Origin: Macrostomum lignano
Lineage: Eukaryota
Assembly: GCA_002269645.1 (NCBI GenBank)
Contig: NIVC01002135.1
Location: forward strand, 1-35,416
Length of the DNA stretch: 35,416 nt
Reading direction: 5' to 3'
The number at the start of each line of letters is the position of its first letter. The stretch's first letter is position 1. Position numbers and translations under genes: made by a program. The notes beneath the pieces were generated by a model. The model saw only the letters and a program-made list of their open reading frames with translations, was not told the DNA's origin and ran no database searches. Positions 17,839 to 34,712 of this stretch are shown here, piece by piece.

Positions 17839-17920
17839 ATGAAGATCTCATTTCTGCTGTCCATCTTGGCGGTGGCTGGCTTGTTTGGTGGCACACGATG
17901 TGCGACAACCATTAATTTTG
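17839..17920 (+). CDS. Gene A exon 1 (signal peptide)
   Basis: MKISFLLSILAVAGLFGGTRCATTINF, donor G|GTGAGT, phase 1. Confidence 0.85.
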
Positions 17921-20900
17921 GTGAGTAATCTTAATCTAAGAATGCACAGCGAATCTCAGAAGTCTTGTTAAATTTTGCACTACCAACTAATTTATGCGAG
18001 CCGTAACTCTGAAACGCCATTTAAAATACCAGAATAAAATATCTATCCACCACCCACAGCTCTATTGTGGGACGAACCTGGTGTGGCCAGCACGGCATCA
18101 AATATGTTTAAACAAATATTCCTGCCTGATCTGCGCAACTCCTGCTTGTCATCGCCTGATGTTAACAACACGGTTTTCAAATTCATTGACGCACCTCAGA
18201 AGGGCCTGTTTGATATTCTGCTGGCTAATTTGCGTAAGCGCAATGTTAATCGAATTGTTAGTGATTAACTGATAATCACAGTCAATAGGTTGACATTTTA
18301 TTCTATTTTTGTTGTTTTACTGCCCAATTTTCTTAGAAATCGACCAGCTGACCAAATCTGGCTGTCTGTTTGCCGGCGCATTCGACCAGGCCGAGTTGGG
18401 GCTGTTCGCTCAGTCTGGGATTCCTTCAGGCGTGCCGGGCTACCCAAGTATGCAGATTCACGTGATGGCGCCACTGACGCTGACCATGGCTGTGGAAGGC
18501 GTATACAAGGTGAAAATCATTTAATTTTGAAGTATATTCTGCGAGCCTTTTTTCAACGAAACTGCTGATCCCAATTTGCTGAGTTTGAGCATGTATGTAG
18601 CAGGAACTCAATATTCACTGAGACAGACATACCGGTATCTTTACGGAGCCTGATCTGGTTTCAAGGCAGACTCAATCAATTTGACGTTTAGCTGCCTATA
18701 ATGTTTGTCTTTCCCAGAGAGACCACAGATACTACGAGGGTTGTCCCAGAAATAGCGGAAAAACCGGTATAGAAGCTGACTGTGATATTCGAATTTGATG
18801 CAACTTGCGTCACAAGTAGAAAAAAATCCAACAGTTGTTTTGCTTTTAAATGAGGTAAAAATGTAAATTCATTCAAAAGTTATGCCTATAATTAGAACAA
18901 GGGGTAGGGGATAGAGTTACACCAAATCGAGCCTACTATGCTGGCCATAGACTAAACTTTTGATGTTTAGTCAGAACCATCGATTCGAAAACAAAAGCAA
19001 ACGAAGAAGCTGAAGAGAAACAAAAGAGCAGCACATAAGCCCTCGAAAAAAAGCAGGAGCTAATCTGAAGCAGAAGCAGAAGCAGAACAACTGCAGGCTA
19101 CAGGCTGAGGGGTGACTTCGTCGAAAAGTCATCAGTCAAGGGTGATGGCAATGCTGCGTGACCGACTTTGCAGACCCCTCAACTTAACTCTACCCCGTAC
19201 CCCTTGTTCTAATTATAGGCATAACTTTTTAATGAATTGGCATTTTTACCCCATTTAAAAAGCAAAACAACCATTGGATTTTTTTCTACTTATGACGTAA
19301 GTAGCATCAAATTCGAATATTACAGGCAGCTTCTATACCGGTTTTTCGCGCTATTTCTGGGACAACCCTCGTAAATTAACTAGAGTAGGCCGCTCAGACA
19401 TATTTTTAGTAAAACAGCTGGCTTCTTTCAGTTCAGTAGCAAAGAAGAATACAGAAGCTATTTTATAAAAATAAAGGCAGCTGAAATGACTTTGATAAGT
19501 TTAGAAGTCTTGCAGGCGTAAACAACTTGCTAATTGGTTTAGCAATAATGTACATTGGCCAGTCCACTGAAATGTACATGGCAGCTTTAGGCTGGAATTC
19601 CGAGAAAGGCAATAAAAATTGGGGTGGGGCGGGAGGAGTAGGCGCGGTTGGATGGTTTAAGATGGGAGGTTAAGAGCCAGTAAATGAGTCTTGGCTTTAA
19701 AAGTACATTAAGATCTTCTGTTTAACTTACTACTAAAATGAAAGTAGCTTACACGCAAATTTGCTGAGGGCCCATCTAATTTATTCTAGTATCTGTGGGG
19801 TCAGACGGGAGTTTTCTGTAAGTCAATCCCTGGGCCTATAAAAGCACTAGTTTAAGCTACATGTACAAAGCCCTCTTCAATAGTGCTTGTAAATTTTATG
19901 AAAAATTTTAATACAGAAAGCATTTGCGTTACAATGCAGGCCCTCACAGAGTCGTTGCGCTTGCCAGAAAAAGGGTCAGTAGACTCAAAGCTGAGCATCA
20001 TTCTTGGGCCCGGGTACAGCATAGAAGAACTGCAGGCTGTTGTCGATCGCTACCCGGGCTATATGTTCTTCTACCAGTTGAGGCTTGGCAACGAGGACGC
20101 CATCGTCAATAAATTGAAAGCGTCCGGCTCAACCAACTTTCTGCTGGCCTCGCCGGCTAGAGAAGCAGACTTTTTTATTTCTGCCGCGTTTAACAGTTTG
20201 CTACTGTCATCGCCTTATCGATGGTTCCTGTTCAATGTGGTGAGTTGGTTGGATTTTTCATTGATTTACTTCAAACAGTCAAAAGTTCCACCCTCCAAAT
20301 TGCGAAAACTTCACACTCACAATTCAACCCTCAAGTTACGCAACTAAGCCGCCGCGAGGAAGGGAAAGTTGATTTAGCTCGTACTATCAATACTCCTAGT
20401 AAAATCATAAATTTTTATGCAATATCAGTTAGAATCGCGATGCGTGTGGGATCCCCTCGCACGCAGAAGTGCGACGACTCTGCGGGGCATCCCAATGATG
20501 AGGCGGCGCAGAAAGTCCTGGGGAAGCTGCTCCAAAGCGTTTTCAATGGCATGAAGCAGAGCTCTCCGCAACATTCTGTGGTGGATTCTCTTTTTGAATG
20601 CTACGTTTTAGGAAGTCCCAGACATGCTCGATGGGATTCATGTCTGGGGACCGGGAAGGCCAGCGCAGAGTGCGCAGCTGTAGCTGTTCCTTCAGTTGAC
20701 TAACAGCATCGGTTTGGTGTGGCGGGGCGTTGTTCCTGGGCTTGGGTCTGCTTAATGTCTAGGCCTGGACCATTAAGCAGACCCAAGCCACCCCAAGCGG
20801 CAATAAGCTTTGCGCGTGCCGTAGGTTGCGTCACTCGCAATAAGTGAAAAAATCATTTCGCTTAGTCGGGTGGAACTTTTGACTGTTGCTGAGTATTAAT

Positions 20901-33600: not shown

Positions 33601-34712
33601 TTGTGTCTGCTTGTTGTGTCTGTGTCTGATGGTTGTATTTGTGTCCCAAGTTTGTGTTTGTGTCTGATGGTTGTGTCTGTGTCTGATAGTTGTGTTTGTG
33701 TCCTATGGTTTTTTTTGTGTCCCATGCTTGTGTCTGTGCCCTACGGTCTGCATTTCTCACCGAGTTGTACAGAATCCAGCGATAGTTGGGACTCCACAGT
33801 CTGCCGTCTAAACCGATTTTCAAGAAAGATTTCAACCTGTCTCTGCCGGCGAGTACTAGCAGTGTGGTGATCTTAGACTGCAGCACCTCGTACTGAATCA
33901 CGCTAATCTTCGTATCATCCAAGGAGTAGCATTGAACTCCGTAGAAAAACTGTCTTATTAAATACTGCACTTCCGACAGCCTGTAGGGATGCCCGACCAC
34001 AATAACCAGCCGCTTAGTTTCGTCGATAGTAGAGGGGCTTGAGGCGAAGTTCTCCTCGAAGCCCGCTTTGGCAAGGTCTGGTCGTTGCATTGTTCGAATG
34101 ATTCGAAACAGGCCATGGGCCAGATCCTGCAGTCTGGGAGGGTCCACCCAGTGCAGCGGTTGCGGCGCCACCAGGGACGATAGAAGTTTTCGAGTTTCGA
34201 GACTGACAGTAGTTGTGCCAGCGAATTGCAGATTTGATGAGTTGGATGAGTCCCTGAGCCGCTTGGCGACTGAAATTATTTATTAGGAGATTGGGGTTTC
34301 GAGTAACTTGAGGACCGGGTTTCTACTCGCAATGTTTTGAGTTTGAGCAATTTTAGATCAAGTTAGAGAGTTAGCTTACGCGTATGTTGGATTAAAATAT
34401 TTTTTTGATAGGATTCGACTTTCCGAATACTTTAGATTGGTATTAAAGTACTTTTAGATGAGATTAATGTACCATCAGATTGGAATAATGTACTTTTAAA
34501 TTGGATTAAGGTACTGAACATGCTTAGACTCACTGGATTGCAGCTGCCGTACGAAGGGTTCCTCCGCAGCGGGAACTCCTCAAACGTGACATTAAAATCT
34601 GCCGGCAATGCAACTCCACGACTTTCGCACATCCGACTGAGCCTTGCACGGAACAGGCCCTGGAATTGGGCGTGCGCCTTTTGCGCTGCCCCAGACTGCG
34701 GCCAGAATAGCG
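27358..34712 (-). CDS. Divergent ionotropic glutamate receptor-like protein, gene B (paralog of A; first exon not found in window; one phase conflict)
   Basis: Exons 34712-34534, 34269-33761, 32954-32778, 32401-32276, 32173-32054, 31975-31859, 29934-29539, 28657-28137, 27652-27358. Lengths 177/126/120/117/396/521 vs gene A 180/126/120/117/396/524. S1 [45 protein letters not shown]; M4 [10 protein letters not shown]. Confidence 0.9.
27917..28072 (-). mobile_element. tRNA-headed CORE-type SINE (gene B last intron)
   Basis: Minus strand TAGTCTAGTG..TGGTTAGAGC (A box-like), GTTCGATTC (B box), then TGTGTTCTTGGGCAAGACAATTACCTCTG...CAGTTCACCCAGCTGTAAAATGG resembling the recalled MIR CORE consensus. 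Confidence 0.75.
28137..28657 (-). CDS. Gene B exon: P-loop, M3, S2
   Basis: [15 protein letters not shown]...AYVGNYAAM...YGTLANSS...FAAIFDT; AA|GTAAGT. Confidence 0.95.
28735..28970. repeat. (GACT)n grading into (AACT)n microsatellite
   Basis: About 33 perfect GACT units to ~28873, then imperfect AACT units. Confidence 0.97.
29539..29934 (-). CDS. Gene B exon: S1, M1, pore helix
   Basis: LYNFTVY...FFLFASLVQ; 396 nt. Confidence 0.95.
29995..31795. repeat. Minisatellite of 20- and 22-bp monomers sharing TCTAACAG(G/A)TGAC
   Basis: TCTAACAGGTGACATCCGTA alternating with TCTAACAGATGACACTCT(C/G)CTG (42-bp dimer), then a pure 22-mer array from ~31255. Confidence 0.98.
31859..31975 (-). CDS. Gene B exon matching gene A exon 8
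   Basis: [18 protein letters not shown]...[12 protein letters not shown]; 117 nt. Confidence 0.88.
32054..32173 (-). CDS. Gene B exon matching gene A exon 7
   Basis: IGNFSTSG...LNLSIFVIT; 120 nt. Confidence 0.85.
32276..32401 (-). CDS. Gene B exon matching gene A exon 6
   Basis: [20 protein letters not shown]...; 126 nt. Confidence 0.85.
32479..32760. repeat. (GACA)n microsatellite, ~70 units
   Basis: Direct reading; source of RQTD/LSVC ORFs. Confidence 0.99.
32778..32954 (-). CDS. Gene B exon matching gene A exon 5
   Basis: ...[10 protein letters not shown]...LYDLLNIW...SCG; |GTAAGT. Confidence 0.85.
33000..33740. repeat. Compound GT-rich repeat of 6-bp modules with ~18-bp period
   Basis: Shuffled TGTTTG/TGTCTG/CTGGTT/ATGGTT/TGTCCC modules; source of TQTQ/HKH ORFs. 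Confidence 0.95.
33761..34269 (-). CDS. Gene B exon matching gene A exons 3+4
   Basis: ...[10 protein letters not shown]...[11 protein letters not shown]; |GTGAGA. Confidence 0.85.
34534..34712 (-). CDS. Gene B exon 2 (ATD start)
   Basis: CTCAG|; ALFWPQSG matches gene A ALLWDEPG; donor GTGAGT at 34533. Confidence 0.8.

Follow-up and report, generated by a model that had tools for sequence, protein, structure and literature searches.

What kind of receptor do two genes encode that lie tail to tail in the flatworm Macrostomum lignano and resemble ionotropic glutamate receptors (iGluRs), and does their adjacency mean that they work together? Both genes, here called A and B, are encoded on contig NIVC01002135.1 of assembly GCA_002269645.1, and the window studied was this entire contig of 35,416 bp. 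They are already annotated in GenBank as hypothetical proteins, are uncharacterised, and are divergent members of a well-known family. Judged from their sequences and those of their relatives, they probably belong to a flatworm-restricted iGluR subfamily and would be subunits of amino-acid-gated neuronal cation channels whose gating has been modified.

Organization of the locus

Gene A and gene B converge, with their stop codons at 25410-25412 (A) and 27358-27360 on the minus strand (B), and their exons are distributed as follows:

17839..25412, plus strand: gene A (BOX15_Mlig005297g2, product PAA60588.1, 837 aa), 11 exons
17839-17920, 18060-18233, 18337-18509, 19940-20239, plus strand: A exons 1-4, GT-AG junctions
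20964-21143, 21597-21722, 21852-21971, plus strand: A exons 5-7, GT-AG junctions
22068-22184, 22921-23316, 23636-24159, 25091-25412 (with stop), plus strand: A exons 8-11, GT-AG junctions
25413..27357, no strand: inter-stop spacer of 1,945 nt, 36% GC, containing both convergent 3' ends
34712..27358, minus strand: gene B (BOX15_Mlig022707g2), exons 2-10 of the 10 in the annotated model
34712-34534, 34269-33761, 32954-32778, minus strand: B exons 2-4, GT-AG junctions
32401-32276, 32173-32054, 31975-31859, minus strand: B exons 5-7, GT-AG junctions
29934-29539, 28657-28137, 27652-27358, minus strand: B exons 8-10, GT-AG junctions

An earlier note, made from the DNA letters alone, had described a tail-to-tail pair extending from 17839 to 34712 with about 1.9 kb between the stops. 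The measured gap is 1,945 nt and the coordinates are exact to the base, 17839 being the ATG of A and 34712 the first base of B exon 2, where B begins on the contig in phase 1. A six-frame blastp comparison of the plus strand at 17-26 kb with the minus strand at 26.5-35.4 kb revealed eight collinear pairs of similar reading-frame segments, at 18.0-25.3 kb on the plus strand and 34.7-27.4 kb on the minus strand. The best pair was A 23624-24160 with B 28669-28136 (E=2e-49), followed by A 22918-23319 with B 29937-29536 (E=4e-36); further pairs gave E values of 1e-13, 1e-12 and 1e-9, and the N-terminal exons matched more weakly. Every intron is GT-AG in both splice-resolved gene models, and B exon 34269-33761 is the counterpart of A exons 3 and 4 fused. 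The matching lengths of consecutive exons that the note had listed were reproduced exactly (126/126, 120/120, 117/117, 396/396 and 524/521 nt for A/B), and in both genes an AA|G is split by the last intron. The two proteins are 34.8% identical overall and, as had also been noticed, diverge most in the amino-terminal domain (ATD), with 27.6% identity there compared with 38% in the first half of the ligand-binding domain (LBD), S1, 53.8% in the membrane segments M1-M3 and 34% in the second half, S2.

The joined A exons translate exactly to PAA60588.1 when the annotated GTAAGC donor at 18233 and the acceptor at 19940 are used. In-frame alternatives (an exon 2 donor at 18260 and an exon 4 acceptor at 19871) lead to an 869-aa variant; for A as well as B, the RNA-based annotated junctions were taken as primary over alternative splice choices.

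Domain architecture

The earlier note had credited both genes with the full iGluR architecture of ATD, LBD and transmembrane domain, and Pfam, hhalign, an AlphaFold2 model and Foldseek all bear this out. The protein features fall on the exons as follows:

17839..21971, plus strand: A exons 1-7, signal peptide (MKISFLLSILAVAGLFGG...) and highly diverged ATD
22068..23316, plus strand: A exons 8-9 (117 and 396 nt), S1, M1 and start of the pore loop
23062-23064, plus strand: A Arg that binds the ligand alpha-carboxyl, from a phmmer alignment to GluK1
23636..24159, plus strand: A exon 10 (524 nt), remaining pore loop, M3 and S2, Pfam Lig_chan
23720-23749, plus strand: variant M3 gate of A, AYVTNYAATR, from a motif alignment with SYTANLAAFL
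25091..25412, plus strand: A exon 11, end of S2 with conserved Cys, M4 and cytoplasmic tail ending in -ESVA
28544-28573, minus strand: M3 gate of B (AYVGNYAAM then R), from a motif alignment

With gathering cut-offs of 30 bits for Lig_chan-Glu_bd (PF10613) and 30.8 bits for Lig_chan (PF00060), both domains were detected above threshold in A (84.2 and 54.3 bits) and in B (83.7 and 68.8 bits), the S1 region of A scoring 75.6-84.2 bits for Lig_chan-Glu_bd; SBP_bac_3 was also above its gathering threshold in the two proteins. Concerning the ATD, Pfam ANF_receptor (PF01094) gave no hit at E<=1 in the N-terminal 380-410 residues of any member of the clade described below, and the ATD was likewise undetected by Pfam in P0155, a protein with the UniRef name 'ANF_receptor domain-containing'. 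A profile of the clade N-termini aligned to a canonical iGluR ATD profile with an hhalign probability of 98.1% (E 1e-13) over A residues 190-394. The AlphaFold2 model of A (pLDDT 86.7, pTM 0.74) shows an alternating beta/alpha fold in the N-terminal domain, and Foldseek aligned about 860 columns of it to full-length GluA2/GluK2 chains, ATD included, with E around 1e-45. It is thus supported that A and B are both complete iGluR-family subunits with a signal peptide, ATD, S1/S2, M1, pore loop, M3, M4 and a short tail.

This is the layout of the AMPA and kainate receptors (rat GluA2, GluK1/GluK2), which share the ATD, the S1S2 LBD, M1, the pore loop, M3 and M4 with A and B and are their best sequence and fold matches. 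The best PDB match of A was GluK1 (165 bits) and that of B was GluA2 (153 bits); the scores of A lie close together (GluK 165, GluA 150, GluD2 136 bits), and no NMDA chain was among the best 60 PDB matches of either protein. Both sides share the Arg, Ser/Thr and acidic residues that contact the ligand, along with the S2 disulfide cysteines. However, A and B differ from AMPA and kainate receptors in that the core is no more than about 25-30% identical, Pfam does not see the ATD, the pore reads QG and not QQG, the alphaF motif is TSY or SSL and not GST, and the gate carries the NYA..R signature.

Both proteins end in short C-terminal motifs, -ESVA in A and -ESRV in B, and the nearest paralogs of A end in -ESNV and -ESYA. 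Such an -ES-x-V/A tail resembles the class-I PDZ ligand of the NMDA GluN2 subunits (-ESDV). By analogy, the conserved tail would suggest, if anything, PDZ scaffolding as in synaptic receptors.

M3 gate, pore loop and ligand pocket

Among about 150 aligned sequences, the M3 motif SYTANLAAF is exact in 99 and differs at one to three positions in about 40 more, its commonest continuation being SYTANLAAFLT(V). Against the canonical SYTANLAAFL, A reads AYVTNYAAT and B reads AYVGNYAAM; both keep four of the nine SYTANLAAF residues and replace the next Leu by Arg. The strong alteration of the gate recognized in the earlier note is therefore real. In place of the QQG of AMPA and kainate receptors, the pore loop carries a single Gln (LIQG); the loop of A reads LIQ|GITGTPPDR, and its only Q/R-site Gln is encoded by the last codon of exon 9.

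The same note held that the ligand pocket had been rewritten as well, and this was not borne out. The equivalents of GluA2 R485, T480 and E705 are kept, as Arg, Ser and Asp in A and as Arg, Thr and Asp in B. The three residues of A fall on the Arg, Thr and Glu of GluK1 in the HMMER/phmmer alignment, those of B were located in an alignment with 150 relatives, and the S2 disulfide cysteines are retained in both proteins. At the alphaF 'GST' motif, A reads TSY and B reads SSL. In a functional survey of 2026, Gly occupied the first alphaF position in every glutamate-selective receptor examined and was absent from it in receptors selective for glycine or other ligands (PMC13648236). With Thr (A) and Ser (B) at this position, the sequences weakly suggest that the agonist may be a small amino acid rather than glutamate.

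Relatives and phylogeny

Word-indexed protein searches were nearly blind to this family, returning 2, 3 and 11 hits, and the alignment query missed the product of B itself. An exhaustive hidden Markov model search of 1.84 billion representative proteins, with a profile made from the large exons of the contig and the two first M. lignano hits, recovered the products of A (P0003, PAA60588.1) and B (P0004, BOX15_Mlig022707). From 1548 down to 371 bits the matches were M. lignano proteins alone; the scores then fell to 235 bits or less for lophotrochozoan proteins named 'glutamate receptor 2-like' or 'kainate-like', which are 25-30% identical to A and B. The top non-flatworm match was a Pecten protein that keeps SYTANLAAF.

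Neighbour-joining (NJ) trees were computed from 411 core columns. In these, eight M. lignano cluster representatives grouped together with 86-90% bootstrap, and at least six gene clusters (at 50% or 90% identity) are found inside this eight-leaf clade. The M. lignano proteins, cestode proteins and one protein of unknown source formed a group with 97% bootstrap, or 82% when the pore and M3 columns were left out. The cestode members (Taenia, Echinococcus, Mesocestoides and Anoplocephala) are annotated as 'Glutamate receptor U1' or 'kainate'. Their gate, AFCANYA(S/A)YR, is invariant, and the NYA..R signature is common to them and to the M. lignano clade. An M3 of the form xYxxNYAxxR, a single-Gln pore and monophyly with the cestode 'U1' proteins were all found, and together they delimit the proposed flatworm 'NYA-R' clade. 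The cestode proteins (e.g. KAL5110580.1) resemble A and B in their ANYA.(Y/F/x)R M3 and single-Gln pore; they differ from A in having only about 22% full-length identity to it, the gate AFCANYA(S/A)YR and Glu instead of Asp as the acidic contact, and they too are uncharacterised. M. lignano also has canonical SYTANLAAF iGluRs, which group with the canonical receptors of other flatworms. Within the clade, the paralogs Mlig034115, Mlig015771 and Mlig025413 belong to the same subfamily as A and B and carry the same gate signature, and one further M. lignano member, A0A1I8GHG1 (P0014), has a deviant M3, NYAARLGAQL.

The attachment of the flatworm clade to other sequences received no more than 30% support in the NJ trees, its grouping with mollusc sequences no more than 35% bootstrap, and orthology of A or B to any class, those of the AKDF subfamily (AMPA, kainate, delta and phi) included, was not recovered in them. 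The drop from 371 to 235 bits and the 97% bootstrap agree with the uncharacterised clade that the earlier note had proposed, outside the characterised classes and with no orthologs beyond flatworms.

That note had further derived the pair from an old inverted duplication. The old split holds, as the two proteins are only 35% identical; a simple sister pair does not, as the nearest relative of A is Mlig034115 on another contig (44% identity, 90% bootstrap). Sister status of A and B through a recent inverted duplication was rejected, a two-member A+B clade appearing in none of 200 bootstrap replicates. From the sequences, the A/B split is apparently old and predates further duplications in the A lineage. 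Therefore, the adjacency of the two genes reflects an old local duplication, of which the pair is a relic and after which the A-lineage copies dispersed, and it is not evidence of co-function. No iGluR gene was called within 10 kb of Mlig034115, Mlig015771 or Mlig025413, and the paralogs P0001 and P0002 could not be placed on contigs. The Mlig034115 group (P0209/P0001/P0002) keeps the Arg and the -ES-x-V/A tail, and in P0209 and P0002 the acidic contact for the ligand alpha-amino group is replaced by Ser or Asn. These proteins are better candidates within the clade for an IR-like recognition of ligands other than amino acids, IR standing for ionotropic receptor.

In the main classification of metazoan iGluRs, that of Ramos-Vicente et al. 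(2018), platyhelminths were not sampled, and a sequence had to retain at least four SYTANLAAF residues to be kept (PMC6307864). Flatworm-specific classes are not mentioned in later broad iGluR studies. The family, the fold and the likely chemistry of A and B are ordinary; it is the distinctiveness of the clade that deserves a proper phylogeny. If true, a branch restricted to flatworms whose alternative gate is invariant would add a class to the metazoan iGluR scheme, and the NYA..R branch would be a natural experiment on how much change the M3 bundle crossing tolerates. Kept in Taenia and Echinococcus, it could also offer a parasite-restricted ligand-gated channel target, and M. lignano is tractable to transgenesis and RNA interference.

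Copies of the locus and the state of gene B

The assembly carries four copies of the A/B locus, all four with the convergent layout, and the reading frames are intact in all full-length copies, that is, in the three other than the present contig (L001, L002 and L003). The ratio of non-synonymous to synonymous rates (dN/dS) between copies was 0.18-0.74 for A, from only 2-5 non-synonymous changes, and 0.45-0.65 for B, with a significant synonymous excess in one pair (P=0.008). These ratios speak modestly for purifying selection on the two genes. The two neighbours clearly differ in rate: when homeologous or redundant copies are compared, B, the faster gene, shows 14-28 residue differences against only 2-5 in A. 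The GenBank annotation of the assembly derives from a genome-guided RNA-seq transcriptome (PMC5730564), so A and B are transcribed in whole worms; the outcome that the earlier note had named as fatal to its proposal, that neither gene is expressed, does not apply to gene models with this origin. Upstream of B, a TMEM234 gene lies at 7006-8453 in L001 and at 6761-8160 in L002, a region beyond the end of the present contig; it was not called in L003.

Two features at the 5' end of B set this contig apart:

34547..34548, minus strand: 1-nt deletion in a G-run of B exon 2, here TAC-GGCAGC, in the three other copies TACGGGCAGC
34747..35416, no strand: 20-mer tandem repeat found by TRF, forming B intron 1 and running to the contig end

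B exon 1, which encodes the signal peptide (MAFSLNRQVKVLISIWLFNCLSGCLEVGGATYNF), has no match on this contig, because the contig ends inside the 20-mer repeat of intron 1. In the copy on NIVC01003601.1, the same repeat lies between the two exons, and exon 1 precedes exon 2 by 2.4 kb.

The deletion leaves 179 nt in exon 2, compared with 180 nt in the three other copies, and raises the question of whether the present B is a null allele or pseudogene copy, with the functional pair residing on other assembly copies. The deletion is seen in none of those three copies, and GenBank annotates only a partial B product of 400 aa here, probably because the deletion shifts the frame. Against a genuine lesion, an 11-kb alignment of the contig with NIVC01003601.1 has 99.77% identity and 23 gaps, and B exons 3-10 are DNA-identical to the full-length copy there, which encodes PAA50603.1 (847 aa). 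An in-frame alternative donor is available as well, the frame being kept only with the weaker GTACAT donor after 34494. Moreover, the assembly is a highly redundant PacBio/Canu product, so that an erroneous homopolymer indel in one redundant haplotig is at least as likely. With the present data an assembly indel and a null allele cannot be told apart, and we regard the loss of B on this contig as a possibility to be held tentatively.

Proposed function and alternative readings

As sequence evidence now stands, A and B are most likely subunits of tetrameric, amino-acid-gated cation channels of neurons. Their S1/S2 clamshell would hold an alpha-amino acid through the Arg, Ser/Thr and Asp contacts, and the altered NYA..R gate probably changes gating rather than abolishing it.

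Several points weigh against this proposal. A gate that keeps four of nine residues and has an Arg right after them could leave the subunit silent, constitutively altered or non-conducting. The trees are distance-based and were built without named NMDA, Epsilon, Delta, Phi or IR references, and long-branch attraction among the fast-evolving flatworm sequences cannot be excluded. The AlphaFold2 model was built from an alignment made up mostly of canonical iGluRs, a bias towards a canonical fold. The dN/dS of B is only moderately below 1 and the differences in A are too few to test. On the present contig the frame of B breaks with the annotated GTGAGT donor (34533). Lastly, no paper or supplement mentioning Mlig005297 or Mlig022707 was found in the full texts and the supplements of two papers.

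A larger claim would make the clade an unnamed Platyhelminthes-specific iGluR class ranking with Phi and Zeta, with the NYA..R gate, non-glutamate agonists, some members that do not bind amino acids, and A and B as heteromer partners. Phi (GluF) and 'Zeta', both of which occur in molluscs, are AKDF classes of non-vertebrates in which the ligand residues vary and SYTANLAAF is in some cases less conserved (PMC6307864, PMC8437780). In these respects the flatworm clade is like them; the Pecten match differs from A and B in its canonical gate. Taken as a whole, this claim appears doubtful.

Unlikely, too, is an analogy with the chemosensory 'variant iGluRs' of the arthropod IR type, in which A and B would be a co-receptor/tuning pair recruited independently to peripheral chemoreception. 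In tuning IRs the ATD is missing, as is at least one of the R/T/D contacts, and the co-receptors IR25a and IR8a keep a canonical M3. IRs and the flatworm proteins are both lineage-specific, divergent offshoots of the AKDF type, and the ATD is kept here as in IR25a/IR8a. The clade is lineage-restricted and has expanded in M. lignano, its gate motif is divergent, and the loss of the acidic alpha-amino contact in the closest A paralogs is what tuning IRs show. However, A and B themselves keep the ATD and all three amino-acid contacts with a changed gate, and so fail the criteria that separate IRs from iGluRs, tuning IRs included; their tails resemble the PDZ ligands of synaptic receptors; and the clade persists, its gate invariant, in the gutless, endoparasitic cestodes, a pattern that a core neuronal role fits at least as well. 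An IR-like role of A and B is made somewhat less likely by their intact ligand triad and ATD and by the PDZ-like tail, and neither the chemosensory nor the heteromer idea has positive support from the evidence here. By analogy with delta receptors, A and B might instead be non-conducting or atypically gated subunits acting as synaptic organisers or modulators, which the clade-wide substitution of the M3 bundle crossing (Tyr for Leu within the motif, Arg for the Leu that directly follows it) and the kept yet very divergent ATD would suit, but this is highly improbable, since the pore loop, the Q/R-site Gln, M1, M3 and M4 are the best conserved parts of the proteins (54% between A and B), which argues for selection on the pore.

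Other features of the contig

The introns of A and B are packed with micro- and minisatellites that produce long spurious open reading frames (ORFs) on both strands. The neighbouring features and the main repeats are the following:

About 10000-13500, minus strand: degraded retroelement ORFs in a stretch of 57-62% GC
14124-16158, plus strand: tetraspanin-like gene upstream of A
20415-20703, minus strand: short ORF (...LPQDFLRRLIIGMPRRVVALLRARGSHT...) in intron 4 of A
24264-24981, no strand: (GATA)180 in the last intron of A
28733-28969, no strand: (ACTG)43 intron repeat
29995-31798, no strand: 22/42-mer array of 1.8 kb, intron repeat
32463-32761, no strand: (CAGA)75 intron repeat
33027-33738, no strand: 19-mer array, intron repeat

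Long ORFs with SIYL, LSVC, QTQT and LVGAP runs were considered as coding and rejected as repeat artefacts of the tandem arrays. The minus-strand ORF in A intron 4 has no Pfam match; we take it to resemble the C-terminus of a Tc1/mariner transposase. In the retroelement stretch, a weak RVT_1 match lies at 13024-13446, and RNase H-like and reverse transcriptase-like strings occur in neighbouring ORFs. The exon 15178-15603 of the tetraspanin-like gene matches the C-terminal half of Pfam Tetraspanin with E 4e-6, below the gathering threshold, and contains a CCG motif.

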